NCBI GenBank assembly: GCA_904063045.1
Contig: CAJFCJ010000070.1
Location: 95,496-159,495, forward strand
DNA length: 64,000 nucleotides
Origin: Dimorphilus gyrociliatus
Taxonomy: Eukaryota > Animalia > Annelida
Direction of reading: 5' to 3'
Numbering within the stretch: the stretch's first letter is position 1; each line of letters opens with the position of its first letter. This document shows positions 5,174 to 64,000 of this stretch, in pieces. The position numbers were made by a program, and so were the translations under genes. The notes under the pieces are model-generated. The model was given only the letters and a program-made list of their open reading frames with translations. It was not told where the DNA came from and made no database searches.

Positions 5174-5830
5174 TTAAAAGTGAGATTTAAACCCTAACCC
5201 TTCAACATTGATATTGCTATTTTGATTTATAGCAAACTTTGAGATGAATATATTATTGATGTTCATAAGGTTGTTGGCACACCAATTTGCAGGTTTGTTA
5301 ATGAATAAAAAGATATAAGTAATAAAAAACATTGTTAGTGCTTTTAGTTTAAATGTTAAAGAACTAGATGGCATTGAACTATTTCAATCTACTTTAAATG
5401 TACTTTAAATCATCTCCTCTGCTACTGACCTTTTATATTGCTACTTGCTTAAGTATTTTATTTCGTGTAAACCAAATGGTATAAATAATGTTGTTAAACT
5501 GGTTACCATAAATAGACCAATAACTATTCTATTGCAATTTCTTAATGAAGACCATAACTTTGCCTTTGTTGGAAAAGCATTACATAATTATCTGTCTACA
5601 GTTACTGCTAGAAGATTTAATGATGAAAACTGACGGAACGAAATGTAAAAATACACAAATAGTTGACAGTTGAATAGTATGTAGAGTGATAGTGGAATAA
5701 TTACAGTTCTAAATGGAGCCACTCCTGTAAATGAATTACCAATTAGTGCCATTAAAATCTCCACTTGAAAATACTGCCAAATAGCGAAAAATTGTCATCT
5801 TTCATACATTTCCTCTTACAATGAAGAAAA
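5174..5830 (-). pseudogene. Class A GPCR pseudogene
   Basis: LMALIGNSF...CQLFVYFYISFRQFSSLNLLAVTVDR*LCNAFPTKAK: the DRY tyrosine codon is TAA; further TM-like segments with stops and deletions. Confidence 0.6.
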
Positions 5831-8311: not shown

Positions 8312-8674
8312 AAAAGATAAACAATGAACTACACAGTTTGGCAACTGTAAAGTGGTGATTGGATATCAGAGGCAGACCTCAAAGTGTATAAATCCTCATT
8401 ATTTTCATTCTAAGCATTCCTATCTGAACCCAAGAAACCTGGGAAGATAACCTGGAAACAAACCTCCACTGGAGCCATCCATCTACTCCTCAATATTGGA
8501 AAACAGTTTGGTAATTTGGCAACCTGCTGTTACGAACAATCTACTATGCTATTGAACTCTCGTATTGCTACTTGCTTAAGTATTATTATTGCGAATAAAC
8601 CGTTTTAATTTAAACATTTGTTTAAAGGTTTGAGAAGAAGCAGTATTGTTGTAACTCGCAAACGCATAAATTTA
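8312..8674 (+). mobile_element. Repeat family A (retroposon-like), 5'-truncated copy with 30-bp target-site duplication
   Basis: Homologous to 36565-37045 and 61460-62015; flanked by taaaatcaaaattatttggc(t/c)aaagtgata at 8282-8311 and 8675-8704. Confidence 0.75.
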
Positions 8675-9289: not shown

Positions 9290-9660
9290 ATCTAATAACT
9301 ACCTACTCTGCTATGGAACTTTTATGGATGTGGCAGAAAAGGATGTGGTAGAAAACAGCCATAAATCTATGGTTTTACCCTAACCCTAACCCAGCCCTTG
9401 TTTTTGCCTGACCTTTTCGAATACCCCTAACCCTTAGATGGGACCCTCCTAAGAACATATCAACAGTTATCTTATCCCTCCTAACCATTTCCCAGGCTGA
9501 AATCTAACTTTCAAATATTTCATTTATGGCCGTTTTCGACTGGTGCCAACTTTTATATTGTAATGAGCTTAAGCACTTTATTTCAAATAAACCATTTAAA
9601 TTAAACACTTTTGTTTAAGGGTTCAAGTAGAACCAGTACTGTTGTTAAATTTGGCGAAAG
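9290..9660 (+). mobile_element. Repeat family A 3' portion interrupted by a MITE
   Basis: ctactctgctat..gaact left of the MITE and aaataaaccatttaaattaaacac...gtagaaccagtactg right of it match the family A tail. Confidence 0.6.
9325..9547 (+). mobile_element. MULE-type MITE (family B, subfamily 2)
   Basis: Near-identical to 41659-41865; ccctaaccctaa core; degenerate TSD aact(t)ttat; 5' terminal 15-mer is tandemly duplicated. Confidence 0.8.
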
Positions 9661-10470: not shown

Positions 10471-10949
10471 TAATACATAAAACCCCAAATTTTTGGAATA
10501 GAAAGCATGTACCTGACTAAAAAACACTACTAAAGCAAAGTGGACAAACCAAAAAGTAGGGTATATGGATGGAACTTTCAAAGCTGTAAAGCTGTCTTCT
10601 TACCAACTATTTTCAATACATTCATTCATAAAAAAGGGTTAGAAGTTAAATATTAGGTATTAGCGCAATCAGTGTAGACTGCTAACCCCTCACAATTGCA
10701 CTCACACTGCTAACATTGTTAGGCTAAAGGTTGATGTAGTTGTTTAGGAATTGCTATCTAAAGTAGCCCTTCTAGCCTAAGCTATTACTGTATCTCCAAC
10801 AAACACAAGATACAAATTGGAAATTCAAAAGACAAAAGAGCTGAAATTAAAAGAAAAATTAAGCAGCAAAGTTGATCATGAAGCTACAAAATTTGGAAAC
10901 ATTGAACAATGACAAGATGTCAGAAAACAATAAAGTTAAAAATATTCTC

Positions 10950-11100
10950 TGTTTTGAGATAGTGAAAAATCCATATGTGAGTTCTTACAAAGTAAACAAC
11001 ATGAAAGGAATAGCATCTGCTGTTGAATAAGATGTAACAACTTTGACCTGCATCTTTTCCATGTTCTTTGTACCTTTGTTAATTCCCAAGTAAAATATCT
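10950..11100 (+). pseudogene. GPCR TM5-like fragment homologous to 47950-48045
   Basis: gcatctgctgttgaataagatgtaacaactttgacctgc matches gcatctgtttttgaataagatgtaacaagtttgacatgc; reads VTTLTCIFSMFFVPLLI. Confidence 0.35.
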
Positions 11101-11723
11101 AAGTGTACAATAGCTTGTATTGTGCATATATCACTTTTTCCTTTTGAATTGTGACCTATCTGCTATTCTATGTAAGCTTTTATTGATTTTTTTATTCATT
11201 CATAAAATATAGATTACTGTGACGGCTGGTAATATTGAGATATGTTGGAATTTCCCTGTCTTTTAAAATCATATCTGCAACTACAAGAAACACCAACAAC
11301 TGTAATCATTTTTGCTGTTGAATTTTATCATAGGATAGAATTATAATTTGCAGAAAGTCTTAGTATGTATTAATGTATTATATCAATTTATGTTTTCAAA
11401 TCTCTCTGTCTCTTATAAGGTGTATTATTTCATGTCAGAAATGACATTTTGTATATCAGTGGAGGGGGGAGGGGTGTGGCAATATAAATGTATGAGGCCT
11501 GTTCGCTATTTGCAATCAATTAGGGGTTGTAATCTGCAATCTGTGTAATCCAGGATTCAAGTATTTGCGGATTGCGTGGGGAAGTCTTCAGTAGGAGTGT
11601 GTTGAAGATGTGTTTTAAAGCACAGGACAGTCTTGCCAAAAAAGAAATTTCCGTATTTAAAAAGTCAATCGTTGTGTAAGAATGATGTGCTGTACATTTA
11701 ATTTAGTATTACTTTTAGGCAAG

Positions 11724-14700
11724 ATGTCAATTGACAGTCACAACTCAAGACTCTCAAAGAAAAGTGCTATCAATTATGCTTTCACAAAGTATTACAATGA
11801 ATTTGCTGCATTGGCAGAAAAATCTTATTTCTTCAAGGTGATTCTATATACATATTTCATTGAAGGAAAAAAAATGGATTCCCTTACTCTAGACTATATA
11901 AAGGATGTATATGAAAAAGAAGATAAAACAGAAGCAATTAAGATGGCATGGGGTTATTTAAAATATGAAGGAATTCCTCAAACAGTAAAAGTCTTAAAAA
12001 CTTTTCACGAATCGAAAGAACTCGCCGAAAGGATGAGCATATCTTGGCAAACATTAATCAATGAAGTTAAACAACACCATCTAACAAAAAATATGAATAT
12101 TCAACTTCTTCCTTTTGATGAAAATTCAAAAGCCAAAATTCAAAATATTATATCTCCATTAGAAATTTTAAAAGTTAATGCTGAGACAATATTTTCAACA
12201 AATTCTGAAAAATCTAACTACAATTATAAAAACTTTCATAATATTTTCAATACAGAATTCAATAAAATAATTGTTCAAGGTGAACCAGGAATTGGAAAAA
12301 GTGTTCAAGTTAAATATCTTATGAATTGTTGGGCTTTGAATAAATGGGATGATGTTTTAAATGATAAACTATTTCTTGTTATCTATATAAAGAATGTTTT
12401 AAACAATGAAGACATATTCGACTCGATATTGAAGAGTAACTTTCCAGGAGATACAACTGTAACAAAGGATAATATCAGAGATTTTTTCGAAGAGAAACAA
12501 ATGAGAGACGTCTTTCTCTTATTGGATGGAGGTGATGAAATTGACAAATTGAAATTATTAAATGAAAATAAAGAATATTGTATTCAAAATTTCATCGATA
12601 GTTCAAATTGTCCAATTCCAACAGTTGTTTGGTGTAGAAATTGGAAATCAATAGAAATTTTGTCTACTTGCGATGTTGCCTTTGAATTAATTGGTTTCAA
12701 TTCTGATCAATTGAAAAAGTATTTTGAAACAAATTTTATTAATATGCCATGTGATGAGTTTGTTTATGCATTGAACAAAGGAAACGGAAATATAAAGAGT
12801 TTTTGTAGAATTCCTCTCCTAGCAACAATTATTTTCTACTTGTATCATGAAAAGAAATTTGAATTTGAATATGATAATTTATACACAATTTATGAGAATG
12901 CAATTGAACTTATCTTTATAAAAAATGGAATAGAATTGAATGATTTAACAATGGAAACTATTTATAGGCAAAGTTTCCTCTGTTTAGCTGATAATAGAAT
13001 TGGAATGAAAATTGATAAAAACCAATTGAAATCATTTCATAAAGTTTTTAAATGCTTTGCACAAATTTTTAATAATTCTGATAATCCGGAAGAACTTGAA
13101 ATTCAATATTTTCATTTGTCTATTCAAGAATTTTTCGCCGCTAAACATATAATAACAAAATATATGGAAAATCGAATACAGACATCATTATATATTGACA
13201 AACAGTTAAAGGATAAAAAAGTACTCAACATTTATAATACAATGAATCTATTAAAGGAAAAAGATGAAAGTATTTTTAAGCATGTTCTTCTCAATTCTAT
13301 GATATTGGAAAAAGCTTTTCAACTTAGTGATAATATCAAAAGTATCCTTACTGATGATTCTGGTAATAATTCAAAAGTTCAGTTAACAGATGAAACAATC
13401 AGCTATTTAATTCTTGATTTAGTCATTGAAAAGATTAAGAATTCTATTCAAGAACTTATATTACAAAAGGTCAAGACAAATTTCAAGAGATTACTACTCA
13501 AAATTTCAAATACAAGTATGATAAAACTGAAAAAAATCCATTTATCAATAGAAAATTTCAATCATTTAGTTTTGAATGATGCAGAAGTAATGAAACAATT
13601 TTTGGTTTTACTACAAAATGATACATTGAGATATTTTGACACTCAAAGATTTCATTTAAACGTAATCTTTGAAAATGATGTCAAATGTATTAAAATTGGT
13701 AATAGATTTAACAGTTTTAATATTTCTGCTAATAGAAATTTATCAAATTCAAATAATAAAAGAATGGAAATTCAGGATAATGGATCTAAATTTAAAAAAA
13801 TGTGGCAATTATTATCAATAACTGATGGATTTGATAATCTTATAAATGAGATTATCAAATATTATAGTTTAACTACATTTGATATTCATGAACAATATTT
13901 ATCTGAGAATCAACTCAAAGCTTTGACAATTATGTTTTCTACATTTTCCCAAACTCTTTCAAATGTTAAATTGAATGTAGGAAAATTGAATGAGAGTACT
14001 GCAAAAATTCTATACAGTTTTATGGACAGTTTAACATACTTGAAATCATTTTCTCTCACATCTTCTAAATCAGATAGCGGGACTAAGTGTTTTATAGATA
14101 AGATAATGGAATACAAGCGTACCTCTTTAGAAAGTTTAAAGATAAAACTGTTATCCTATACATCACTGGAGTGTATATCATTGAGTGGTCTACTAGAAAA
14201 ATTTCCTAAACTAAGATACTTGGAGATTTCAGGTTTAAATGTTACATTTGCAAATCATGAAATGAATGATATTCTCTTGGATGAGATTGAAAATATATGT
14301 CTGGAAAACTGTTTTTTGAATGACAAGCAAGCTGAAATAATTGTCAACAAGATACATAATAATAGTAATTTTGATGATTTATTACGAAATCGGCAATTAG
14401 GTGATGCGTTGATAGTTCTGCAAAGACACTTTTTAGATTTCAACAAGACATTGAGAAATATATCAATAAAATTTTCACAAAGATTTACCTATATGGATTT
14501 AAGAGGAAAAGTCATCTCATTGTCCAATTGTCATCTGCAGACAATTGAAAATGTGTCATCTTTTGACAAGAATAATGTTTTTCAGCAAAGTCTTGGCTTG
14601 AGAAATTTCGAAGAAAGTATTCCATCTCTCTCCATTTTTAAATGCCATTCAAGTGATAAGAATAATGATTGCCAGCAAGAAATCTTGTGCAGTTACCTAA

Positions 14701-15929
14701 GATCTTGTAAGAATTTGGAACATTTTCATATTCAATCAGAAAATGACGTTTTCGAATATAAAACAATTTTTCATTCACTCTCATCATCTTCTAAAAACTT
14801 CCTTAAAGTTATCAATGTTAGCTCTGCCATCCAATCGGAGGCTTCCGGTTTGGCATTTGCGGAACTGCTTGACAATTGTAAATGTTTGGAAAATATTGAT
14901 ATAAGCTCAAATAGTTCAATTGGAGAAAGAGAATTTGAAAAGATTTTATTATCCCTAGCAAATTCATTGGCAAAGTTGAGCCATCTAAATCTAAGTAAAT
15001 GCAATTTGTCAACTTTAAACATTAAAACTCTTAACAAACTGCTGAAACAATGCTCATCAGTTGTTTATATTGATATAAGTTTTAACAAATCAGTTTATTC
15101 ACTGTTTAATTCACTTGTAGAATCTTTAAAGCAATCATCTGGTGTGTTTAAACACCTCAATGTAAGCAATTGCTCTATAACAAATGAATCAGCTCATGAA
15201 GGTTTAAATAATTTAAGATATTTTCCTCATCTGGAATTTTTGGATGTCAGTTCAAATGCAGAAATTGGTAGTGCTATTGCTAGATTGAAAAAATCTTTGG
15301 AGAATTCTAATTCATTGAAATATTTAAAATTCAATAATTGTAATATATCTAAACAGTTCAGAAGACGGCAGACAGTAAAAAATCAGTGGTTTCCTGCTCT
15401 TGAATATTTAGATTGTAGTTGTAATCCGGGTATTGATAATGATATTGGTATTATTGTCACCCTTTTGGGAAGATCATTTGAGACTCTAAAGTATATCAAT
15501 TTGAGTAATTGTCATATAACTGAAGATATTGGTAAACAGTTTGCTGTAAATCTTCAAAGATTTCAGTATCTAGAACATTTAGATTTAAGCTCAAATAGAG
15601 CAATTGGGAATTCTATAAATGATATATTAAGTTCTCTGGAAAGCTCTTCAGAAACAATGAAATATCTCAACTTTAGTGACTGTAAAATGACAGAAGAGTC
15701 TGGTAATTATCTGGAAAAGTATTTGAAAACTTTTTCCTCACTAGAATATTTGAATATCAGAAGAAATGGAAATGTTTGCAAGAGTTTAAAAAATATTACA
15801 AAATCTTTATTGGAACTATCAAAAACATTAACTCATGTGTATATTGATTTCTGCGGCCTTTCTACCTCAGACAGGCCTATAGTTGAATCCTTACTACAAT
15901 CACTATCTCTTGAGGACTTTGAATTGTAA
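11724..15929 (+). CDS. NLR-type receptor: death-fold (CARD-like) N-terminus, NACHT, C-terminal RNI-like LRRs; single coding exon (ORF open from 11682)
   Basis: Walker A IIVQGEPGIGKS, Walker B FLLLDGGDE, CRIPLLA, FHLSIQEFFAA, then repeated LxxLxLSxN/CxL units; 1415 codons without a stop in very AT-rich DNA. Likely ATG at 11724, just after an AG acceptor. Confidence 0.93.
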   Translation: MSIDSHNSRLSKKSAINYAFTKYYNEFAALAEKSYFFKVILYTYFIEGKKMDSLTLDYIKDVYEKEDKTEAIKMAWGYLKYEGIPQTVKVLKTFHESKELAERMSISWQTLINEVKQHHLTKNMNIQLLPFDENSKAKIQNIISPLEILKVNAETIFSTNSEKSNYNYKNFHNIFNTEFNKIIVQGEPGIGKSVQVKYLMNCWALNKWDDVLNDKLFLVIYIKNVLNNEDIFDSILKSNFPGDTTVTKDNIRDFFEEKQMRDVFLLLDGGDEIDKLKLLNENKEYCIQNFIDSSNCPIPTVVWCRNWKSIEILSTCDVAFELIGFNSDQLKKYFETNFINMPCDEFVYALNKGNGNIKSFCRIPLLATIIFYLYHEKKFEFEYDNLYTIYENAIELIFIKNGIELNDLTMETIYRQSFLCLADNRIGMKIDKNQLKSFHKVFKCFAQIFNNSDNPEELEIQYFHLSIQEFFAAKHIITKYMENRIQTSLYIDKQLKDKKVLNIYNTMNLLKEKDESIFKHVLLNSMILEKAFQLSDNIKSILTDDSGNNSKVQLTDETISYLILDLVIEKIKNSIQELILQKVKTNFKRLLLKISNTSMIKLKKIHLSIENFNHLVLNDAEVMKQFLVLLQNDTLRYFDTQRFHLNVIFENDVKCIKIGNRFNSFNISANRNLSNSNNKRMEIQDNGSKFKKMWQLLSITDGFDNLINEIIKYYSLTTFDIHEQYLSENQLKALTIMFSTFSQTLSNVKLNVGKLNESTAKILYSFMDSLTYLKSFSLTSSKSDSGTKCFIDKIMEYKRTSLESLKIKLLSYTSLECISLSGLLEKFPKLRYLEISGLNVTFANHEMNDILLDEIENICLENCFLNDKQAEIIVNKIHNNSNFDDLLRNRQLGDALIVLQRHFLDFNKTLRNISIKFSQRFTYMDLRGKVISLSNCHLQTIENVSSFDKNNVFQQSLGLRNFEESIPSLSIFKCHSSDKNNDCQQEILCSYLRSCKNLEHFHIQSENDVFEYKTIFHSLSSSSKNFLKVINVSSAIQSEASGLAFAELLDNCKCLENIDISSNSSIGEREFEKILLSLANSLAKLSHLNLSKCNLSTLNIKTLNKLLKQCSSVVYIDISFNKSVYSLFNSLVESLKQSSGVFKHLNVSNCSITNESAHEGLNNLRYFPHLEFLDVSSNAEIGSAIARLKKSLENSNSLKYLKFNNCNISKQFRRRQTVKNQWFPALEYLDCSCNPGIDNDIGIIVTLLGRSFETLKYINLSNCHITEDIGKQFAVNLQRFQYLEHLDLSSNRAIGNSINDILSSLESSSETMKYLNFSDCKMTEESGNYLEKYLKTFSSLEYLNIRRNGNVCKSLKNITKSLLELSKTLTHVYIDFCGLSTSDRPIVESLLQSLSLEDFEL

Positions 15930-24559: not shown

Positions 24560-25661
24560 TACTGTCCATGTTTTAGGAATACCCTTTAAAAACTAACAGC
24601 CATTTTAAAATGTCATCCAAATCATATAATATTTTTGACATTCTATTTTTATGTGGAATTATAAAAAACATACTTGTTTTCCATTTATTAAAACTTAAGG
24701 ATTGCAAAAATCCTTAAACATTAATGAATCTCAAAGATTATGATTTAGCTTTATTTTGACTATGGTGAGCCATATGAACAATGAAGAGAGGTTGGAAAAT
24801 TTAATCTTACCCTGTTCCAGATAAAAAACAAACTATCTGAGAGAAGAAAAATGGATACTGAAATATTGAATATTTGTAAAGGACTTAAAATGTCATCCAA
24901 TACTTTGAACAGTCTTTGTTTCATAGATTGTGATTTAAATGAAGAGCAAAGTAGAGAGATTGGAATGTTTCTCATAGAATGTTCAACAATGGAAACAATA
25001 AATGTATCAAAGAATAGAAGGATGGGTGATGGAATATTTAATATTTGTGAAGGACTTAAAACATCATCAAATTCTTTGAAACATCTTGATTTAAATGTTT
25101 CGGTGTACAACAAAGTATAATGATTGGAGATTTACTCAAACATTGTTCCAGAATAGAAACAATAAATTTATCTGTGAATATAGGGATGGGTAATGGAATA
25201 TTGAATATTTGTGAAGGACTTAAAATGTCATCAAATTCTTTGAACAGTGTCATTTTCCAGAATTGTAATTTAGATGAAGAACAAAGTACAATAATTGGAG
25301 ATTTACTCAAACAATGTTCTAGATTAGAAACAATAAATCTATCTGGGAATAGAACAATGGAAGATGGAATGTTGAATATTTTTGAAGGACTTAAAATGTC
25401 AACAAATACTTTGATCAATCTTTATTTTGAGGATTGTAATTTAAATGAAGAACTAAGTGCGGAGTTTGGAAATGTCTTAAAACGTTGTTGCAAAATAGAA
25501 ACAATCGATCTATCTGGTAATAGAAACATCTGTGGTGGAATATTGAATATTTGTGAAGGACTCCAAATGTCATCAAGTATGTTAAACAATCTCTATTTTG
25601 AAGATTGCAATTTAAATAAAGAACAAAGTACAGAAATTGGAAATTTACTCAAACATTGTTG
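24560..25661 (+). repeat. Tandem 171-bp (57-aa double-LRR) coding array, RNI-like, frameshifted
   Basis: The ggact(t/c)aaaa(t/c) anchor recurs at 24881, 25052, 25216, 25387, 25558 (171,164,171,171 bp); unit GILNICEGLKMSSNTL..L.F.DC.LNEEQS.EIG.LLK.C..IETINLSGNR; the 164-bp unit shifts the frame. Confidence 0.85.
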
Positions 25662-26491
25662 NNNNNNNNNNNNNNNNNNNNNNNNNNNNNNNNNNNNNNN
25701 NNNNNNNNNNNNNNNNNNNNNNNNNNNNNNNNNNNNNNNNNNNNNNNNNNNNNNNNNNNNNNNNNNNNNNNNNNNNNNNNNNNNNNNNNNNNNNNNNNNN
25801 NNNNNNNNNNNNNNNNNNNNNNNNNNNNNNNNNNNNNNNNNNNNNNNNNNNNNNNNNNNNNNNNNNNNNNNNNNNNNNNNNNNNNNNNNNNNNNNNNNNN
25901 NNNNNNNNNNNNNNNNNNNNNNNNNNNNNNNNNNNNNNNNNNNNNNNNNNNNNNNNNNNNNNNNNNNNNNNNNNNNNNNNNNNNNNNNNNNNNNNNNNNN
26001 NNNNNNNNNNNNNNNNNNNNNNNNNNNNNNNNNNNNNNNNNNNNNNNNNNNNNNNNNNNNNNNNNNNNNNNNNNNNNNNNNNNNNNNNNNNNNNNNNNNN
26101 NNNNNNNNNNNNNNNNNNNNNNNNNNNNNNNNNNNNNNNNNNNNNNNNNNNNNNNNNNNNNNNNNNNNNNNNNNNNNNNNNNNNNNNNNNNNNNNNNNNN
26201 NNNNNNNNNNNNNNNNNNNNNNNNNNNNNNNNNNNNNNNNNNNNNNNNNNNNNNNNNNNNNNNNNNNNNNNNNNNNNNNNNNNNNNNNNNNNNNNNNNNN
26301 NNNNNNNNNNNNNNNNNNNNNNNNNNNNNNNNNNNNNNNNNNNNNNNNNNNNNNNNNNNNNNNNNNNNNNNNNNNNNNNNNNNNNNNNNNNNNNNNNNNN
26401 NNNNNNNNNNNNNNNNNNNNNNNNNNNNNNNNNNNNNNNNNNNNNNNNNNNNNNNNNNNNNNNNNNNNNNNNNNNNNNNNNNNNNNNNNNN
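25662..26491. other. Assembly gap (830 N)
   Basis: Run of N beginning inside the LRR array. Confidence 1.
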
Positions 26492-26899
26492 CTCCCCTCA
26501 CACCCCTTCATTTATCTCTCCTAATGTTCATATGGAAAATTTATCAAAAATCCACTTTTAATCTTTCCGCAGAGATTTGCCAGAGCATGATACCTTCTAC
26601 CATTGTCATAATGCCTTAAAATCTCGATAACAATATTCCTTAACTTGATATATATAATATGCATGTGTGTGTGTGTGTAAACGCAATTGGTTTAAAAAAA
26701 AGAGAACATAGATATTTTAAGTAGGCCTAACTGCTATTCACTATGCTTTTATATTGATCACTCCCCCTCCTGGTTGTCTTGGCCACCTTAGTCATATGGC
26801 CTCCAGTATCAAAATGTACAGTAAATTTTTAGCTATAGCTAATCAGAAAAGTATAAACAAGCTTGTAGAAAAAATAATGCCTTATTGTAGTCTGGAAAT

Positions 26900-36450: not shown

Positions 36451-36564
36451 TAATTGGTCTGTACATGATTTAAGCCTATTGGAAATGTATTTTAGACGCT
36501 TATCATTGTACAATTTTCATGATATTTTATGCTTATACTATGCTACTATATACCACTTATTCAA

Positions 36565-37045
36565 AAACCTACGCTAGAAATACAATGACCATTTAGCCAA
36601 ACTCAGACCTTGTCACACTTAAGGTTCATCTTCAAATGCCACTTAAGGTTTGGCCAAGTTGTGATTGATGATCTTGCTTCTTTAGGGTTTTGCCAAAGTA
36701 TGATTAATTAGTTTGAACTTTGTAACATTGTTCCTAGACCACCAACTGTTTAGGGGTGATTGGATATTGGAGACAAACCTACAAGTATAAAAATCCTCAC
36801 TGTTTTACTCTAACTGTCTTACCTTAAACTGGAAAGATCAACTGGATACAACAACCACTGGGACAAGCATTCTACCCTTTCAACATTGAACGCTAGTTTG
36901 GTAACTTGGCAATCTACTATTACAAACTATCTACTCTGCTATTCAACTTTTATATTATTACAAGCTTAAGTATTTTATTTCAAATAAACAATTTAAATTA
37001 AACACTTTGTTTAAAGGTTTGGTGTAGAACCAGTACTGCTTTAAA
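36565..37045 (+). mobile_element. Repeat family A, longer copy
   Basis: aaaacctacgc...ggtttggccaagtt...ggtaacttggcaatctactattacaaactatctactctgc...gtagaaccagtactg homologous to 61460-62015. Confidence 0.75.
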
Positions 37046-41964: not shown

Positions 41965-42080
41965 GGAAGTCTTAGATTTAACTTTTTATTTGAAATAAAC
42001 CATTTAAATTAAACACTTTGTTTAAAGGTTCGGGTAGAACCAATACTGCTGTAACTTGTGAACAAGTAAATTTGCCAAGC
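41965..42080 (+). mobile_element. Repeat family A 3' tail
   Basis: aaataaaccatttaaattaaacactttgtttaaaggttcgggtagaaccaatactgctgtaacttg. Confidence 0.6.
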
Positions 42081-42189
42081 AAGAGAAATACATTATTAAA
42101 TTTTATTTCTGAAACATCAATTGTTTTTGACCATTCTATATCCAGGTTTTTTGATTCTCCCTAAAAAAGAGGCTTCCATGTTAGTTCCC

Positions 42190-42500
42190 GTTTTCAAAGC
42201 AGCATTCCAATATTCTTCTCTCTTTTCATAGCTTGTCAGTTCAGTTCTCTAACCGTTAACTAGTTGTTTAAACTTGCTTGTTTAGAACTAGAAAATCATT
42301 TACTCAGCATTTTGCTAATTAATTTCTACCGAAATTACATTGATTAAGACTATTTGTGGACGAACTTGGAAAGTTCTATTTGTGTGAGTACTTTGATAAG
42401 TTGATAAATAATTGGAAAGGACGAATACTGTTCTGAAGAAACAGAAATTCCTACAATTACTATACAACAAAGATATTGTTCACAAAAATTTCAAGATTTA
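42190..42500 (-). pseudogene. LGR-like GPCR fragment (family C)
   Basis: gttctatttgtgtgagtacttt and cttgtcagttcagttct shared with the 23.4-24.2 kb and 49.0-49.2 kb copies. Confidence 0.45.
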
Positions 42501-42900: not shown

Positions 42901-43734
42901 TTTTGAGTGGAAAAAGTGAATTATTTAACTGATAGAACTTCCTTAATTATCTTTTGTTTATTTAGAATGAAGATTATGACATTTATACAACCGAATTTAT
43001 AGAAAGGACTCTTTAAAAAATTTTTTTTTACTTTACAGTAATTTTTATATATTTCAAATTTTCACTAAAACGGAGGAAAAGAGTTCTGTCTTGATCCCTT
43101 TTCATTCAAAAAAGTTAGATAATACTCAATTAAAAATTTTTTATGACATTTTCTGACTAGTGTTAGACAACTCTAGAACAAAAAAAAAATAGAGAATATT
43201 TCATAATGAGGAAGAAAAGACTTGAATCGAGGGAAAAAATCTTTGGATTAAATAAAAGATGGTTATCTAGAATATCCAAAGAACTAAATGCAGCTCGCAG
43301 TGTTATACAGTAAAACCTAAAGAAGAGGATCAAATGTCCTTGAATGGAAGACAAATCCGGGCCTGATCTCCCCAAGAGACAAGAGAAGTCTTATAATTAT
43401 TCAAAAGAAAAACTCTGTCAAAATTGACACTTTGTCTTATGGTTGTGAGGGTGATAACGGGGTGAATATATGATGGCGTGAATGTTTGACTGTAAACGCC
43501 ATCCATGATTCGTGTTCCATGAACTACCATTCTCAGTCGCGAACCATAGTCGCGGATTGTGCGTTCAAGAATTCACCCCTTGAAATATGTATATGTTGTA
43601 AGTGGGTCAAGTTTGCTTAGTGACCTTTAGACAGGCGTTGAGCAGTGCCTGATAGTCATATATAAAGGCACGAACAAGAACCCTTATGAGCCTATAGCTC
43701 GAAGCGAAAAAACCAAAAATAGATTAAAGACGGA

Positions 43735-44600
43735 TGGCTAACAAAGCATATCCATATATCTAGAACAAAAAAAGCGGACAGCAGCGACGTTTAATACAAA
43801 CCGCTTTATTCAGCAAGACAAGCTTATAAACGACTTATAACAATATTGCTTAAAAGCGCAACAAATATCTAAATATTTGTTAAATAAGTTCTGCAGTTTT
43901 GGAAGTTTTAAGAGTATATTAAATTTATTTTCATAAAGATATAAAGAATTATTTAATTGTAATATTTTCAAATTTAAAAATCTTGAAAAGTACTTTTACT
44001 GATTGAAGATATTGAGCAGTATGCTATTTTTAAAATTTGAAGTTTATGTAAATGTTTACATTTTATTTTAGATAAAATTGATATTTTTGTTTTTGATGTC
44101 AAGATCAATACGAAGTGGAATTTTTTTAAAAGATATATCCTTTTAAAGTGTGTTCACTTATATCAAGAATTTTAAGAAGTTTAATCATACTTATTACTTT
44201 CAAATTGTGAAGATTATTTTCCTAAGATTTAAATGAATAGCATTGTTAATTGTGATTTTTTCAATTTGGCTGAAAATGCAACTTTCCATTTTTCTAGAAC
44301 TCAACGATCCAAAAAAAATTTTAAATTATCAAGCCGAATTATTTCTGTAGAATTAATGATTTCGCTTAAATCTTTCAAATTAAAGTTACTTTTCTACAAT
44401 TGTCTATCACATTCTATTGAACTATATATGGAATATGTACAATTGTTAGGACAATTTAATTCGTCACTTTCCTCTCTACAATTCACAAATTCTAAAAGTT
44501 TCAATCATTTTTCTTTCATTTTTACATTTAAAATAATTAGAAAGAAAAAAATTGTCTAAATTTTCTTTTATAAAAGAAAAGAATTTAGTATAGATCTTAT
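43735..44600 (+). pseudogene. Possible F-box/LRR-like remnant
   Basis: TATA-like tatataaagg near 43660, ATG at 43735, LxxL-periodic fragments; weak. Confidence 0.25.
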
Positions 44601-46000
44601 AACGATTCTTTCCATCACAAATTTGAACAACTGATATGCAAAAAGAAATAAATTTGCACTTATATTCACCTTTCTCCACATTCAACATTTATACAATTTT
44701 CAAGATCCAGAAAAGGAGAATGAATTCTATTCCTTAAATTTCCCATAGTATCATAAATTAGTTTACATTGTGCAGAATAAATATTTCTTAATAGTCCTTT
44801 TGGATTGTATGACTGATATTCATTTCTTTTTAAATATTTCCAAGATACTTTATTAAAAAATTTGAGCACCTTTTTATAGTGTAAAAATAAGTTTGTTTTT
44901 TAGTCATAAAATGCTTGGAAAAGTCAGGAACTCTAATAAAACGATATAGACAACTAATTCCAACTTAAAATCTATTAACTAACATAAAAAAAATGGAAAA
45001 GATTCAGCCTATAATATTAGATTTACTTTTAAAAATTAAGAATATACTTTTATCTAATAAATTTTTTGAAAATAATGAAAATTCTTTACCAAATTCATAT
45101 TTTTTCTACCAAAATTGAAAACTGCCTTATGACGGGTAATTAACTCCTGCTTTTTTGCTAAGCAAGAAGATAGGACTTCATTTACTTTATCTTCATCCTC
45201 GGCATGTACTTCAATAATACAATGATAAAGTTTCCTTTCCTTAGTTCTCATTAACAGTTGTTAAGAATCTTTTAAATCATTCTAGAGTATTCTAGAAAAT
45301 ATTTCATTAGTAAATTGCTCAAATGCTTCATTATGTGGGAATCTTCAAACAAGTTTACTTCTATAATTCGACATCTACTCCACTTTTCTTATTCCACATA
45401 ATATCATAAAGAAATCTATTAATAGTTAAGTTTCTTCAATTGGAAAGTCTGATAGCTATTTTATTATCTTACCTTTTATTTCTTTTATTCAATCGAATAA
45501 ATTGCTGACTGTTTATTTTGATATCCAATATTAGGCCTCTAACAAATTCTATATCTTTATTAGAAATATCAAACTGTTTTCTGCATTCTTCTTTTAAATT
45601 ATTCTCATCAATAATTGGATTAAATACTTCAACAGAATTTTTCCTTTCATTTAAATTGAAATCATTTTGAAATCTCTCTTTAAAATCAGCAAGTAAAGGA
45701 GCATTTGCCAAATTTCTACAAAGAGCTACAAGAGAAATTAGAAAGATGTCCCTTTCTTCTATTGAAACGGCTAATTCTGAACTGATATTTCGCTTAAGAG
45801 ATCGAAGTAGTTCATTTGCCAAATAGCATGTTCCCAAACTATGTTCAAACTATTTTGAGTAGCAGTTGGATAAACCAAAAAACATGGGCCAAGTTGTTTG
45901 ATATACCGTAAACGTTGAAATTGAGGTGTGTCAATGACTTTAATAAGTAGAAGATGAAATATGCAATTTATAATTATGGATGTATTGATAGATATATTTC
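44600..46000 (-). pseudogene. SAMHD1: SAMHD1-like HD-domain gene (decayed, HD motif substituted) followed by RNI-type LRR-like sequence
   Basis: [41 protein letters not shown]...ERDIFLISLVALCRNLANAPL; after a phase-2 intron FLYDIMWNKKSGVDVE; EAFEQFTNEIF; LMRTKERKLYH; FNFGRKNMNLVKNFHYF: collinear with the SAMHD1 HD domain. Then MGNL...FLDLENCINVECG...QICDG. Confidence 0.85.
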
Positions 46001-47209
46001 GTATAATCAGAATGATTCATGCGCTTTGTTCTTTTAGAGATAGTTACTTAACTACTTTTAATAATTTTTTTTAAACATTACATCTTATAGTCTACTCTCA
46101 AAAATTATTAATTTGATTTTTCAATAATAGCTCCCTCCATTATCTAAAGTAGATTTATAAAAATCATGAGACAATTGTTATAACTGTAGCTAATTACTTG
46201 AAAAAATGGTCTTTAAGATATACCTAAAATATATTTAATCAAATCCATTCAGACATATAATACCCCAATTTTAAAAATGATCACGCAACCATCAAAATGC
46301 AGAAAAAGAGGTATATTAAAGTAGGACATTTCTACTAATAAACGTAATTAATGATTGACAATTGACAGTGAGAGTTCCTTTTTTTTGTTTTTAAAGCATA
46401 TTTAATCAATTTACAGATGATTTTCTTCTTTCAATTCATTGTTTGTTAAGTTAATGATGAATAAATAAAAAATGAATATAGATGAATAAATATCATTTTT
46501 GTATTTTTGTTTGTTTATCTCTGGAGAGATGTCAATACTGACTGTTTTTAAAAAAATACCCACTAATCAATGGAAGATCCAAAAAATGTGATCAATAAAG
46601 CACTCATTTTCATTACCCACTGACCTAATCTTTTTTGCAATGACTGGTAAATTCTTATCTTTATCCGCTGGGACTTAAACTACTTGTTATTTTTTAAAAG
46701 TTTGTCAAAAATTTTTGATTTTGTTTCTTTTTAGCTATTCTTCTCCTGACTGCAGAAGATGATATTGCGAGGAATAAATGGCATTTCAGAGTTCAACCAT
46801 TTATCTCAATTCCTAGTTTGGCTACTGATAGTAATGTTGAAATTGACAATGTTTTTTGATAAATGAGATCAAAGTTCACGAAAATTTTTTTTTCTAAACG
46901 ACTTTATTTTGTATTTCCAGCTTTTGAAGTATTTAAAAACCGATCAAAAGTTAACAAAATAAATCCCTTGTTTGGGAAAACTGGTTGATATTAAACTCTG
47001 TATTACCAGGCGTAATTCCTGACAAAGAAAGTAGTTACTTACTTCCTGTTTACAAGATTTGAGAGTGGAAAAGTAAAATTTAAAAAGTTTCCTACAATAT
47101 TGGTGAGTCGATTAAAGACAAAATATTGCGAATAAAGGTTTAATGTTAGATATTAATACAAAATTATGATTCATATCAAATATAGGGTGTAAAATATGTT
47201 TTTTCTGAC

Positions 47210-48702
47210 AGGAGAATAGGCCTATAACATCAAATGATCCTTTTTTGAAATAAATATTGAATTTCTTCCTGACAATTTCCTGCAAAGAGATGCTTCATTT
47301 GGAAATCAGAGAATAATCAAATTTGTAATCTATTGTCCCAAAACAAAGTTTGGTATTTGGATGGTATGTTTATGGTTGTCAAAGAACCATTTTTTCAACT
47401 TTTCTCCAATCCTTCCTTTATAAAGAAAGATGAAGAAACAAAGTAGATTCCTTTGACATTTATGTCCATGACATCAAAGAAGAAGAAAGGGATCAACAGA
47501 AGTCGCCCACTACCCATGGCAGAAGTCGCCCAGAACTGTGATTGAAGTCGCCCAGGACAAAGCAGAACTCGCCCTGTGCACTTATTAAAATTGTATAAAT
47601 AGACGAAGTTGAATAGAGACTATTTTTTCTTGTTCATTTCAAATAGAGAGTAATTTCTGAATAAAGTTCAGAACATTTTTGCAAAACTTCTGATGAAGTC
47701 ATCTGAAATGATATGTATGAGTTTCTAGTTCTATATAAGCGAATTTAAACAACCAGCTAATGGTTACAGAACTGAACTGAACTGTCAAACTGGAGAAATG
47801 TATTTCCTTTGATACATTTACCAAAGCTTGGGTTACCTTGGTCAAAGGATTGCAAACTTGAAATGTAACAGTCTCACAATGCATATATAACAAAAACATG
47901 AAAAACTATTGCATCACTTATGGCTAAGATGTGGCACTGCAAAAACAAACCTGCCTCTTCTGCATCTGTTTTTGAATAAGATGTAACAAGTTTGACATGC
48001 ATTTTTTCTATATTGTTTGTTCATTTGTTAATTCCATAATGACACCATCTTTTATGGTCAAAGAATCTATTTCCCACGAAATAAAGGTCTTTTTAAAGTT
48101 ATAGAATCTAATTCTACTAAATAGAAGTCTTTCTCAAGCTCGATAATTATAATTCCTATGAAATTACCTTTTTTGTAAACTTCCACAAATATAATTCCTA
48201 CGACATAAAAGTCATTCTATAGTTGCACCATTATAATTGCTATGAAATAAAAGCCTTTCTAAAGTTCTATGATATCTGAAGTCTATTACATTATTATTTC
48301 TAAGTGCACATCATTTCTTGTTTTATCCCTGAAAAACTTAAATAAATCAACAAAAGACTTTAAATATTTAAAACAACAAGAAAAAAGATATTTTCCCACT
48401 TACTGGGGCGACTTCTGTCATTCATCTGGGCGACTTCTGCCTTAGTTCTGGGCGACTTCTGCCATGGGCGACTTCTGTCCTGGACGACTTCTATCGTATT
48501 CAAGAAGAAAGCATATATACAAGTATTAAGGGTAACTTAACAAATATTTCATCTGCCCTCATATTCTTGAGGAAATTCCAACACTTACAAGTTAATAAAG
48601 TTTCTCATTTTGCACCAACTATATTATTTTATTATTTGCTTCTATTTCCTTTAAAATTAAAACGGTTGCTTTGCAAAAAGGGGACGAGTTTTCCAGTTCC
48701 CC
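47210..48702 (+). mobile_element. MULE transposase remnant (intron-bearing) interrupted by element E
   Basis: EFLPDNFLQRDASFGNQRII...WYLDGMFMVVKEPFF...KKDEETK.IPL...MTSKKKK|AYIQVLR resumes in frame across the duplicated TSD; TIR-like end ggggacgagttttccagttcccc at 48680-48702. Confidence 0.75.
47489..48501. mobile_element. Non-autonomous MULE (element E, Pack-MULE-like) carrying a GPCR gene fragment
   Basis: Inverted terminal arrays of agaagtcgccc (47489-47580) and gggcgacttct (48405-48501); perfect 9-bp TSD aagaagaaa (47480-47488, 48502-48510); interior 47700-48045 homologous to GPCR families elsewhere in the window. Confidence 0.88.
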
Positions 48703-48919: not shown

Positions 48920-49245
48920 TTCAATTGTTTAAAGACATTCCAGAACAAGGTATCATGTGGATTGATATAATTTCTGTACTTTGTTACATTGTAATTGTAG
49001 GAATTTCTGCTTCTTCAGAACAGTATTTATCCTTTCCAACCATTTACCAACTCACCAAAGTACTCACACAAATAGAATCTTTTGAAGTTCCTACACAAAT
49101 AGTCTTAATCTATGTAAGTTTGGTAGAAATCAATCAACAAAACACCAATATTACGTGCAAAGACTATATATTGAGTAAATGAGTTTCTAGTTGTAAACTA
49201 GCAAGTTTAAACAAGAAGCTGACGGTTAGAGAACTGAACTGACAA
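48920..49245 (+). pseudogene. LGR-like GPCR fragment (family C), ends at a 10-N gap (49246-49255)
   Basis: Reverse-complement match to 42190-42500 and 24050-24200. Confidence 0.45.
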
Positions 49246-61125: not shown

Positions 61126-63146
61126 AGTATTGTAAACGTACCATATGTGACTTTAAATGCTCTGACGAGAATGAACTTTGTCCGCCCTCTTGCCAGCTAT
61201 GTGAAGATTATAGCTACAATGGTAACTGATTGATAACTGAAATATGGAATACTAAAGGTTTACGTTTCTAAAAAATATATAAACAGCGTGTCGCAAGCTA
61301 GCCAATTTGCATCTTTCTTTTTCAAAAAATTCTCCTATTTTTTAATTCATTCAATTTTTAAAAATTTTTGAAAAGGATTATTTTTCAAAAATATATTGTA
61401 CAACTTTGGTTATATTTTACATGCTTGAACTCTATTATTTTATGCAACATATACATGTACATCTTAAAACCTACGCAAGAAAATGCTATAACATTGGCCA
61501 AACATAAGTCTGATTAGTCAGCTTGAAGGCTCATCTTTAATTACCAATAAAGGTTTGGCCAAGTTATAATTTAATTAACTTGCCTAGGGTGTGGCCAAGT
61601 TATAATTCAATTAACCTTCCTAAATGTTGAACCTTGTAACATCCTGTTACTAAAGATAAATATGAACTACACATTTCGGCAACTGTAAAGTGATGATTGG
61701 ATGTCAGAGACAAACCTCAAAGTATATAAATCCTCATTATTCTCATTTGGCATGCAGCTTCCATCTGGACCCAAGGACCTGGGAAAATCATCTGGAAACA
61801 ACCTCCACTGGAACCATCCATCTACTCCTCAACATTGGAAGACAGTTTGGTAATTTGGCAACCTGCTATTACAAACTATCTACTCTGCTATTGAACTCTC
61901 ATATTGTTACTTGCTTAAGTATTATTATTGCGAATAAACCATTTTAATTTAAACATTTGTTTAAAGGTTCGAGTAGAACCAGTATTGTTATAACTTGCAA
62001 ACGCATAGATTTTGCCAGCAAGAGCAGTACAATATTTATATATATATATATATGTATACCAGTTTATTTTATCTTATCATTAAACTTGAATAATTCTACA
62101 TTAAAACAATTTCTAACTGAATTTTATTTCCCCAATCTTATATTTCTACAACTTTCAAATGTCTATTTTGAGATTGGATATGTATCAAAATCAATTTTTA
62201 ATCTAACACAAATTCAAAGTTTCAAACTGGAAAATGTTCATATTGAATCACGTGATAATTATATTTCTTTTTCTGGTATTATTCAATTACGTAATTTACA
62301 CTTGAATCGGATAAACATACATTATTTAAGTAGTGAATCATTTTTTAAACTTTCAAAACTTAAATATTTGAAAATAATCAATTGTCCAATTAAATCTATT
62401 GAAGAAGATGCATTTAAACATATTTCTAATCTAATAAGTTTGATATTTCATCGGGTAGTTCTTCCATCAAATTTAACCAAGAATTTTTTTAAACCATTAA
62501 TAAAACTTGAGTATTTCCGGAGTGAAAATTTCAAACTATGCTGTTTTATATCACAAATTCTTTCTCAGAAGATAAAATGCTATCCATTCATTTCAAATAA
62601 TCAAATTTGTGAACTATTACTAGGTTCACACGTGCTCAGAGTGTTTACTTGGATTTTAGGAATATGTGGATTAATTTTCAATATCCTATCAATCTTCTTG
62701 AGAATTTTCACATTCAAAAAATCAACAGCTATATTTTATTGTACTCTAGCATTTGCTGATTTGGTAGGATCTATTCAAACTGTAATATTTGCAATCAAAG
62801 ACAGCGAACTTAATGGCATATATATGGAAAATGAAAGTTTATGGAAATCCAGCAAACTATGTTCTATTGTAGGCTTATTTTCAACATTTTCGCTTATTCT
62901 ATCAACTACCAGTTTATTATTAGTGACTGCAGAAAAATATAGCGAAATTGATAATATAGGCGTTGGTAAATTCAGCCTATTAAGAGTAGTTATTTTATCA
63001 TTATCTAGCTGTCTTTTTGCATCGATATTGGCTGTGTTACCTTTATTCCTCTATAAAGTGAGCAACAGTATATTGTTTTTCTTCCATTTGTATAATTTAA
63101 TAATTCACAGGCCTACTACGAGCAATTTTCCACCTGTGTGTTTTAG
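61126..63146 (+). pseudogene. GRL101/LGR-type LRR-GPCR, truncated after TM4/ECL2; exons about 61126-61221, 62063-63057, 63111-63146
   Basis: Cys-rich exon (CDFKCSDENELCPPSCQLC) splices in phase 1 to LRRs (IEEDAFKHISNL), hinge FKLCCF..C..ICELLLG, TM1 LRVFTWILG, LAFADL, W.SS.LC, LLLVTAEKY; after a phase-0 intron AYYEQFSTCVF* stops. Confidence 0.8.
61460..62015 (+). mobile_element. Repeat family A, longest copy, inside the LGR intron
   Basis: Continuous homology with 36565-37045 and 8312-8674. Confidence 0.75.
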
Positions 63147-64000
63147 TAAATCCACTGCTCTTTACAGGCATGCTAATATCACAGATTTTGAAACAAAGAA
63201 AACTTAATAACAGAAATAAAAGGTCATTGATTGATTGATTGATTGAAATTAAGAAAAACCTTGTAGAATGATTATTGCTTTCATTGCAAACTGCAGTTTA
63301 TTGAAAATATTCAATTGGAAACAAATAATAAAAGTAAATTTGTTATTTCATACTTTCATGATCACTCATTCACACCTTTTTTTCAATATAGATTTAATAT
63401 TTTTGAAAGGCCTATACAAGAACTTTATAATACAAGATGAAGATCAAAAACCATTTGAGAAAACAGATACAAACAAAAAATTGACTTGAAAGATTTACAA
63501 CATATACATTCTTTCCTTTTGTCCAATGACAGCAATGGATTACTGTGTAAAGAATTCATATTCACTCAATTTTAAAGAAAATGCTATTTATCCACTGGCT
63601 AGTGATTAATTACACATATATTTGTTACATATTCATAATCAAATCATTTTTTTCCCTTCAGAAGAGATGTTATTACTATTCTTATGACGCTATTGAATGT
63701 TTTAATGAACAATACCAACAAAAATACATGTTCGATTTTGGATTTTATATTAGGCAGGCGTTGCAAAAAGAATATGTTCAAAGAAAAATGGGTGATCAAT
63801 TTGTTTGTTCAAGCAACAAACAACTTTATACATTATCACCTATGAATCATATGTACAAATCATAAATATATATATATATATATATATATACTGCATATAT
63901 TTAATAAAACATTAACAACTATTGAAATTTCATCCCTTCAACTTTACAACCAGTAATTCCTTTTCAAAATTTTCTAAATGCCCAACATTTGTATTTTCAC

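Follow-up and report, generated by a model that had tools for sequence, protein, structure and literature searches.

Does the SAMHD1-like sequence at this locus belong to an innate receptor of a new class? A sequence-only reading of the window (the whole 64,000-nucleotide stretch analysed, positions 95,496 to 159,495 of Dimorphilus gyrociliatus contig CAJFCJ010000070.1) had proposed that a dead SAMHD1 domain, replacing NACHT, was fused here to RNI-type LRRs, this copy being a pseudogenised member of such an HD-LRR family. If true, the proposal would describe a new innate immune receptor architecture, and its removal avoids a false lead. Our analysis makes it highly probable that the sequence is a unitary pseudogene, namely a decayed DNA-level duplicate of a SAMHD1-like paralogue with a rewritten active site (the RN type), and that the LRR-like sequence downstream belongs to a distinct fragment, also decayed.

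A SAMHD1-like remnant on the minus strand

The minus strand shows homology to the SAMHD1 HD domain from about 46020 to 45063 (window positions, used throughout unless another locus is named). The piece 45472-45849 matched SAMHD1 chains in a phmmer search of the PDB (E=3.7e-7), and its best match among the representatives was the D. gyrociliatus protein DgyrCDS14884 (E=4.4e-27, 55% identity); the homology noticed in the sequence-only reading was thus upheld. The tblastn blocks of the remnant corresponded to aa 16-187 and aa 299-393 of DgyrCDS14884. The Pfam HD profile gave no score on the window pieces, nor on intact DgyrCDS14884. Read against this protein and its gene, the remnant and its flank contain the following features, from 5' to 3' on the minus strand.

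45979-46020, minus strand: degenerate N-terminus with a probable start codon, ATG, at 46020-46018 (read against the N-terminus of DgyrCDS14884)
45960-45978, minus strand: former site of intron 1, intron absent (intron map of the DgyrCDS14884 gene and alignment)
45850-45959, minus strand: first part of exon 2, 83% identical to DgyrCDS14884, with the equivalents of the allosteric-site-1 residues D137, Q142 and R145 retained (alignment)
45847-45849, minus strand: 1-bp deletion in a T run, AGTTTCGAACAT in the intact gene against AGTTT-GAACAT in the window (alignment columns 318-330)
45473-45849, minus strand: second part of exon 2 with the rewritten catalytic motif, 54% identical to aa 53-171 of DgyrCDS14884
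45416-45472, minus strand: retained intron 2, 57 nt, GTAAGA...TAATAG (position and phase as in the DgyrCDS14884 gene)
45367-45415, minus strand: start of exon 3, FLYDIMWNKKSGVDVE, with E as the D311 equivalent, terminating at the deletion breakpoint near 45368
45361-45368, minus strand: junction of a 410-bp deletion, with TAG after it at 45363-45361 (abutting blastn blocks)
45063-45329, minus strand: distal block, aa 299-393 of DgyrCDS14884, 51-54% identical (tblastn and alignment)
44690-45062, minus strand: 3' flank, SAMHD1 C-terminus unrecognisable and all frames closed (shuffle test and stop counts)

Both altered motifs that had been reported were present. CRNLANAP is encoded by TGT AGA AAT TTG GCA AAT GCT CCT at 45720-45697, in which R-N is AGA AAT (45717-45712) and is followed by LANAPLLADF, and D-V-E-L-stop is read at 45375-45361. 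The homology had also been called near-complete and collinear; this description failed, as the 410-bp block is absent at 45368 and the last ~56 codons are undetectable. Local alignment of the C-terminal tails of DgyrCDS14884 and the canonical paralogue DgyrCDS6560 to 44600-45075 gave best scores that 113 and 172 shuffles out of 300 also reached. The stop codon of the intact gene, projected onto the window, would lie near 44895. There was no SAM domain upstream of the start of the remnant, and this was also the case in the intact D. gyrociliatus paralogues, including the canonical enzyme. An exact-protein look-up returned no gene on record with precisely the 122-aa ORF product of 45472-45837, a result that is compatible with a gene model over the locus.

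The remnant is a DNA-level duplicate of an RN-type gene

DgyrCDS14884 is an uninterrupted protein of 449 aa, encoded on contig CAJFCJ010000095.1 (locus L001) by a gene with four introns of 55-62 nt, the first of which is 62 nt long and follows aa 14. Its R-N motif, LCRNLANAPLLADF, has AGA AAT codons identical to those of the window copy and reads RN...LANAPLLADF. The tree placed the window copy and DgyrCDS14884 in one clade (support 100/99), to which canonical DgyrCDS6560 was sister (100/100). The two RN genes share the active-site motif with its codons, the position of intron 2, 50-55% amino-acid identity and about 70-73% DNA identity; in contrast, intron 1 and aa 188-298 are missing from the window copy, which contains frameshifts and nonsense codons and has an unrecognisable C-terminus. 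Judged by sequence, the RN type is a D. gyrociliatus-lineage-specific SAMHD1-like paralogue, of which DgyrCDS14884 is the intact member.

The retained intron also bears on how the copy arose. Intron 2 is still in place, intron 1 is absent, and introns 3 and 4 would fall in the deleted block. Since intron 2 was kept, the window copy is a DNA-level duplicate and no retrocopy, and an origin as a processed pseudogene was ruled out.

The dN/dS between the window copy and DgyrCDS14884 was 0.29 (dS 0.90, 260 codons), a pairwise estimate with dS near saturation in an AT-rich genome; it suggests that the window copy was once functional, probably during part of its history. Unique amino-acid changes numbered 39 in the window copy against 22 in DgyrCDS14884 (p=0.04).

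Another explanation for the juxtaposition of the remnant with LRR-like sequence is that both are host pieces captured together by a transposon, in the manner of a Pack-MULE. Dispersed repeats do flank 43.0-47.5 kb, MULE transposase remnants lie nearby, and 42236-42299 and 47717-47780 form an inverted 64-nt pair with 86% complementarity. However, this pair does not extend past about 70 nt and belongs to a repeat with more copies in the window, for example at 49179-49242. The SAMHD1 copy, moreover, spans the start codon to near the end, keeps an intron and has a dN/dS well below 1; therefore, a once-functional duplicate fits better than a captured fragment, and we consider transposon capture very improbable.

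The window copy is broken at several points

The sequence-only reading had placed a frameshift at FEH and had called the copy a pseudogene on account of its stops. Comparison with the intact paralogue gene confirmed the former as the 1-bp deletion at 45849-45847, and the latter was borne out by lesions along the length of the copy, which has no uninterrupted coding sequence. Two blastn blocks, 45368-45960 (73% DNA identity) and 45093-45368 (69%), abut in the window and are 410 bp apart in L001, where the intervening 10681-11091 encodes aa 188-298 of DgyrCDS14884 (~111 codons) and contains introns 3 and 4. At the former intron 1 site, the window has 10 nt and the spliced DgyrCDS14884 message has 6, as counted by eye from both sequences, so this 4-nt excess also shifts the frame. 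Within the well-aligned coding sequence of the distal block, two nonsense codons are in frame, TAG at 45284-45282 and TAA at 45263-45261.

Could these lesions be assembly errors or unrecognised introns in a gene that is whole or almost whole? One region that seems to hold stops is indeed the conserved 57-nt intron, and T runs such as the one with the 1-bp deletion are prone to sequencing error. Neither point accommodates a 410-bp deletion that removes ~111 conserved codons, the two nonsense codons inside well-aligned coding sequence, or the loss of the C-terminus, and an intact gene is even less probable than transposon capture. In the preferred reading, a gene of the RN type would have been duplicated at the DNA level to give the copy in the window, which would then have been inactivated by the two deletions, the 4-nt excess and the two nonsense codons, with loss of its 3' end. 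The copy is predicted to make no protein now and is part of no fusion.

The active site was rewritten before the copy died

The window copy and DgyrCDS14884 share the replacements H206R, D207N, H210N, H215A and H233E, and D218 is replaced by R or K. The roles of these and other residues are taken here to be those seen in published human SAMHD1 structures. The metal-binding H...HD...D tetrad is incomplete in the window copy: H is kept at the H167 equivalent, R and N replace H206 and D207, and E stands at the D311 equivalent, where DgyrCDS14884 retains D. Among the equivalents of the allosteric nucleotide site, D137, Q142, R145, R451 and K523 are present in the window copy, K116, V117 and N119 are lost, and R333, R352, K354, H376 and K377 fall in the deleted block, which also removed Y315 and D319. 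Intact DgyrCDS14884 retains nearly all allosteric nucleotide-site residues.

The sequence-only reading had supposed that the remodelling of the site preceded the death of the gene. This supposition was strengthened: intact DgyrCDS14884 carries the same rewritten motif, with identical codons and shared derived states, which places the remodelling of the active site earlier than the inactivation of the window copy. In this scheme, the metal-binding H-D pair and four more active-site positions would have been replaced before the duplication, with most allosteric residues kept. By analogy with the residue roles in human SAMHD1, we infer that the RN type is without dNTPase activity.

Canonical SAMHD1 (PDB 6brg and 7ujn, and DgyrCDS6560) and the window copy belong to the same HD-domain fold family and are collinear in their homology, and both have the allosteric-site-1 motif and the histidine of FEHSLG; they differ in the replacement of H206, D207, H210, H215, D218 and H233, and in the broken state of the window gene. 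The best PDB match was 6brk_A, an engineered dead SAMHD1 ('HD to RN' mutant), because it has exactly R-N at the H-D position. Two residues are altered in that mutant, whereas the natural RN type also alters the flanking GHGP...SH residues and others and is therefore more deeply remodelled.

The pseudogene provides independent evidence that the rewrite, from H-D to R-N with at least four further active-site changes, is old. At least two gene copies appear to have inherited the rewrite, with purifying selection maintaining it. An old, inherited rewrite is a reason to regard DgyrCDS14884 as a true pseudoenzyme that merits biochemical study. The dead RN copy lies within a stretch rich in NLR, LRR and GPCR genes, and the intact RN gene is followed, 3.2 kb downstream and in the same orientation, by an NLR gene. 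These positions could fit a small, turning-over family of RN-type pseudoenzymes in dinophilids, in which two or more members were once functional and one has since died, that is linked to NLR/receptor clusters and acts with receptors as a separate polypeptide, for example as a nucleotide-binding sensor, regulator or decoy; we regard this as improbable.

Some SAMHD1-like paralogues in freshwater snails and in fishes also had degenerate HD motifs, and therefore catalysis may have been lost repeatedly in the SAMHD1 family while the fold was retained.

The remnant is not joined to LRRs

In favour of the proposed fusion, LRR-like sequence is present on the same strand, 0.7-1.2 kb downstream of the remnant, and the region is rich in NLR and LRR genes; the intact RN paralogue beside an NLR gene at the other locus also speaks for it. 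The C-terminus of the remnant had been said to continue into MGNL with no obvious break. Instead, the three frames contain 14, 13 and 7 stops between 45062 and 44600, and HD domain and LRRs share neither a reading frame nor a gene. The two peptides cited as one LRR unit, 'FLDLENCINVECG' (piece 44669-44899) and 'QICDG' (piece 44479-44688), come from two different frames, and the pieces overlap at 44669-44688.

Nor did these peptides resemble the RNI-type unit, as had been claimed. We built a custom HMM from 8 array units of the window, and it recovers those arrays at E 4e-44 to 0.08; with filters off and E<=50, it listed neither cited piece. tblastn with the window arrays and NLR found nothing in 43.4-46.4 kb, and Pfam LRR_6 had no match on the cited pieces. 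The LRRs further downstream appear to belong to the 'typical' class of extracellular proteins and are accompanied by cap-like Cys motifs.

A wider HD-LRR family likewise found no support among relatives. DgyrCDS14884 and DgyrCDS6560 (449 and 452 aa) both terminate after the SAMHD1 C-terminal region without an LRR. The HD piece retrieved 83 cluster representatives, all without an LRR Pfam domain, and an LRR domain was likewise absent from the best 120 of 646 DgyrCDS14884 homologues; the longest relatives listed carry a second HD, crystallin, RVT, C2 or SH3 domains. According to the sequence-only reading, intact paralogues that ended after the HD domain with canonical residues would speak against it. 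The first part applies to both intact paralogues, and the second to DgyrCDS6560 but not to DgyrCDS14884, which has R-N.

The NLR beside DgyrCDS14884 has a gene call of its own, and its match is to the NACHT-containing part of the window NLR (aa 223-605), in which Pfam places NACHT at 196-353. The NLRs, with NACHT and RNI-type LRRs (for example the 1415-aa window gene at 11682-15929), have only their genomic neighbourhood in common with the remnant, and the oligomerising nucleotide-binding domain is an analogy; unlike them, the remnant has no NACHT, no RNI-type LRR and no frame continuous with any LRR. A pseudogenised HD-LRR receptor is thus the least probable of the explanations considered, and, because the remnant is not joined to LRRs, a new class of SAMHD1-LRR innate receptor is not supported.

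The downstream sequence resembles a decayed receptor ectodomain

The LRR-like impression would be due to a distinct decayed fragment on the strand of the remnant, which begins ~0.4 kb beyond the point where SAMHD1 codons are last recognisable. Three features were assigned to it.

44605-44673, minus strand: tentative LDL-receptor class A-like half-motif (Y-x-C...C-I...C-D-G) that includes 'QICDG' (Pfam PF00057 E=0.66, profile positions 5-26 of 37)
44397-44504, minus strand: SDELNC, then CPNNC...IEC...L, tentatively an LDLa end and an LRR N-terminal cap, assigned by eye (no Pfam match)
43813-44393, minus strand: about five decayed 'typical'-class LRR units in shifting frames (Pfam LRR_8 E=0.0099, cut-off 27 bits)

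'QICDG' fits better as part of a weak LDLa-like motif that would open this fragment. A PDB search with the LDLa-like piece gave only a chance match to the viral M152 protein. The LRR units at 43813-44393 matched the LRR region of the window LRR-GPCR ORF (tblastn E=0.002), found only extracellular LRR proteins in the PDB (E about 1), and were scored as LRR-like (0.91) by Atlas features. The downstream LRR fragment had no match in L001, and therefore the juxtaposition is specific to the window locus.

tblastn with the window's two GPCR ORFs found no 7TM match on the minus strand in 40-43.8 kb. A word search with the LRR-GPCR ORF (62032-63204) gave 5210 candidates, none of which scored, and no variants of the GPCR ORF were on record by exact-protein look-up. 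Rfam found nothing in 36-49 kb, and a plasmid search with the GC-richer block 43380-43830 found nothing.

The fragment resembles the N-terminal ectodomain of a GPCR with LRRs. As a comparison we took the architecture of the LDLa-containing LRR GPCRs (type C LGR / relaxin-receptor-like proteins). The fragment shares their motif order of an LDLa-like motif, a Cys cap, typical LRRs and a CCAF-like hinge; in contrast to them, it has no 7TM, shifts between frames, contains an in-frame stop and scores weakly throughout. The hinge-like motif, C-C-A-F at 43863-43852, closes the LRR units. The character of the sequence changes at about 43.81 kb.

Identity and decay of the SAMHD1-like copy

In the AT-rich window (~29% G+C), SAMHD1-like peptides were visible in the three-frame translation of the minus strand. 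A 126-codon piece (45472-45849) matched SAMHD1 chains in the PDB (E = 3.7e-7), and the window's HD piece, run with HMMER against 1.84 billion representatives, returned 83 matches, the best being P0001 (DgyrCDS14884), an intact 449-aa D. gyrociliatus paralogue (E = 4.4e-27, 55% identity). These results bore out the SAMHD1 HD-domain homology proposed in the sequence-only reading. The codons it gave for the altered motifs, including AGA for the His to Arg change, were also correct: TGT AGA AAT TTG GCA AAT GCT CCT at 45720-45697 and GAT GTC GAA TTA TAG at 45375-45361. The top PDB match was the mutant chain 6brk_A, which has R-N at the H-D position, as does the window, and ranked first because of this shared replacement pair. 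The natural R-N pair is identical to that of this engineered SAMHD1 mutant (protein P0129).

The P0001 gene (L001:10001-11586, contig CAJFCJ010000095.1) served as the reference for anatomy; it contains four introns, each 55-62 nt long, which follow aa 14, 170, 232 and 262.

Features of the window copy, by comparison with P0001 and its gene
46020-46018, minus strand: probable ATG, with a degenerate N-terminus that lacks the SAM domain
45960-45978, minus strand: intron 1 missing (compared by reading with L001:10044-10105); 10 nt against 6 in the spliced message, a 4-nt excess that shifts the frame
Exon 2, minus strand: well kept; amino acid identity 83% (part A) and 54% (part B)
45849-45847, minus strand: 1-bp deletion in a T run
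45472-45416, minus strand: intron 2, kept at the same site and in the same phase
45329-45063, minus strand: distal block, equivalent to P0001 aa 299-393
45284-45282 and 45263-45261, minus strand: nonsense codons in the distal block

Two blastn blocks, 45368-45960 (73%) and 45093-45368 (69%), adjoin in the window and lie 410 bp apart in L001; a clean 410-bp deletion removed aa 188-298 and introns 3 and 4 from the window copy. The final ~56 codons were not found, the best local alignment scores being equalled by 113 and 172 of 300 shuffles. The earlier description of the homology as near-complete and collinear was therefore overstated. The frameshift noticed at FEH is the 1-bp deletion in the T run, and the stops inside 45472-45416 are intronic. 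With both deletions, the 4-nt excess, two nonsense codons and an undetectable C-terminus, the copy is truly dead, as had been claimed. It is a DNA-level duplicate, since one intron is retained. Intron 1 of the RN-type gene (R-N at the H-D position) is lacking almost precisely, with 4 extra nt in its place; the difference reflects either a loss in the window copy or a gain in the P0001 gene. The SAM domain is also missing from both intact D. gyrociliatus paralogues.

Remodelling of the active site

We aligned the window copy and P0001 with P0084 (DgyrCDS6560), the canonical enzyme of D. gyrociliatus, and with a primate SAMHD1 of 626 aa whose H-D pair is at 206-207. P0084 showed canonical motifs (LCHDLGHGP, DVDKFDY). 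At the equivalents of H206, D207, H210, H215 and H233, both P0001 and the window copy carried R, N, N, A and E; the D218 equivalent was R in P0001 and K in the window copy. In a maximum-likelihood tree of 27 rows, these two sequences paired with support of 100/99, and the pair was sister to P0084 (100/100), separate from all other animals sampled, indicating that the RN type is a lineage-specific offshoot. Because an intact paralogue shares the altered states, the suggestion that the active site was remodelled before the gene died was upheld, and the dead second copy adds evidence that the rewrite is old.

Over 260 aligned codons, the window copy and P0001 gave a dN/dS of 0.29, a rough estimate because dS (0.90) is near saturation. 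With P0084 as outgroup, 39 unique amino acid changes fell in the window copy and 22 in P0001 (p = 0.04). These values suggest that purifying selection acted on the window copy through much of its past and was later lifted.

The window copy itself is a relic without activity. Its parent RN type would have lost dNTP hydrolysis, because substitutions affect two of four metal ligands (H206, D207) and another four residues of the active site (three histidines among these four). P0001 retained nearly all equivalents of K116, V117, N119, D137, Q142, R145, R333, R352, K354, H376, K377, R451 and K523, which we take, from human SAMHD1 structures, to be allosteric-site positions; this suggests that the RN type may still bind nucleotides and oligomerise, possibly together with the canonical enzyme in mixed assemblies.

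Degenerate H-D motifs also occurred in other natural SAMHD1-like paralogues, from Physella acuta (RG, FN), Lymnaea stagnalis (LS) and the fish Chanodichthys erythropterus (YN), and tandem HD-HD proteins in Physella (853 aa) and Myxocyprinus (1171 aa, with C-terminal beta/gamma-crystallin domains); proteins of these two kinds are P0003, P0026, P0030, P0045 and P0005. Judging from these sequences, the family may have lost the catalytic pair repeatedly.

The proposed LRR fusion

The C-terminus had been read as running, with no evident break, into sequence resembling an RNI-type LRR unit. The last recognisable SAMHD1 codon lies at ~45063 and the stop of an intact gene would fall near 44895, so the cited peptides, "MGNL...FLDLENCINVECG" (44749-44675) and "QICDG" (44625-44611), are in the 3' flank. 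They are read in separate frames, on pieces that share 44669-44688, and the three frames contain 14, 13 and 7 stops between 45062 and 44600. With the NLR and the RNI-type arrays of the window as queries, tblastn recovered every array and found no RNI-LRR similarity in 43.4-46.4 kb, and Pfam gave no LRR match on the peptide pieces at E<=10. A custom HMM of eight 57-aa units from the window's own arrays, run unfiltered on all 2718 six-frame pieces, recovered the arrays (E 4e-44 to 0.08), with neither of the two peptide pieces in its output even at E<=50.

The same strand does carry another decayed coding fragment, at ~44.69-43.81 kb.

Features of the downstream fragment
44479-44688, minus strand: weak LDL-receptor class A-like match, Y-x-C...C-I...C-D-G (Pfam E = 0.66, profile positions 5-26 of 37), which includes QICDG
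44397-44504, minus strand: ...SDELNC then CPNNC...IEC...L, by motif reading an LDLa end and an LRR N-terminal cap
43863-43852, minus strand: C-C-A-F motif closing the LRR run

About five LRR-like units with shifting frames follow the cap, backed by Pfam LRR_8 (E = 0.0099), tblastn similarity to the LRR portion of the LRR-GPCR ORF in the window (E = 0.002), PDB matches that were all extracellular LRR proteins (E about 1) and LRR-like language-model features (0.91). Related ORFs lie at 60.6-63.2 kb, and tblastn found no 7TM region 3' of the fragment. From these motifs, we lean slightly towards reading the fragment as what is left of the ectodomain of an LRR GPCR with an LDLa module. Cysteine-rich modules of this sort lie outside the cell, and a cytosolic SAMHD1 fusion would clash with that placement. 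The juxtaposition is local, because the fragment had no match at L001.

Relatives gave no sign of an HD-LRR family. The two intact D. gyrociliatus paralogues, of 449 and 452 aa, each stop after a normal C-terminal region. A Pfam scan found HD, PDEase_I, HD_assoc_2 and SAM, with single cases of crystallin, RVT, C2, SH3 and ATP_bind_1, and an LRR domain in none of the 83 representatives; precomputed Pfam for the best 120 of 646 P0001 homologues contained only HD and SAM-type domains, PF09235 and PF09606. The searchable literature yielded no SAMHD1-LRR fusions or SAMHD1 pseudoenzyme paralogues, and the paper describing the D. gyrociliatus genome (PMC7854359) does not refer to SAMHD1 or to NLRs. 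Thus, the observation was partly confirmed and its interpretation partly supported: remodelling before death stood, and a receptor in which a dead HD domain replaces NACHT did not.

Genomic neighbourhood

Within the window, the 43.0-47.5 kb segment has no second copy, and dispersed repeats flank it. The pseudogene and the LRR fragment lie between the arms of a 64-nt inverted pair (42236-42299 and 47717-47780, 86% complementary). This pair is part of a dispersed repeat (other copies e.g. at 49179-49242) and extends no further, so it probably does not represent a transposon end. A G+C-richer block (43400-43810), unique in the window, begins at the end of the LRR fragment and matched no Rfam family or plasmid.

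Similar gene company was noted at L001:8774-21586 and in the window at 11682-36430. The RN-type gene at L001 lies just downstream of sequence resembling the window's 326-aa GPCR ORF and is followed, 3.2 kb further downstream on the same strand, by a NACHT-LRR gene of 1424 aa. That gene is homologous to the window's 1415-aa NACHT-LRR ORF (11682-15929), itself an exact match to a gene of CAJFCJ010000070.1, which puts window position 1 at record position 95496. The window copy likewise has NLR, LRR-array and GPCR genes as neighbours; such linkage could arise by chance where a region is prone to duplication. A tblastn search with the NLR of the window found no NACHT region beside either the RNI-type array at 24.8-28.1 kb, which contains an assembly gap (run of N, 25660-26500), or the one at 35.1-36.4 kb. 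In the record portion up to window position 25929, these arrays were not called as genes.

A dispersed repeat at 61396-62032 is 98.6% identical to L001:20086-20722, and this identity between contigs marks it as a young mobile element; further copies lie at 8313-8673, 36506-37044, 41983-42092, 9567-9643 and 5412-5473. The LRR-GPCR ORF of 416 aa (61957-63207) takes its first 25 codons from this repeat, and its start is therefore probably not genuine.
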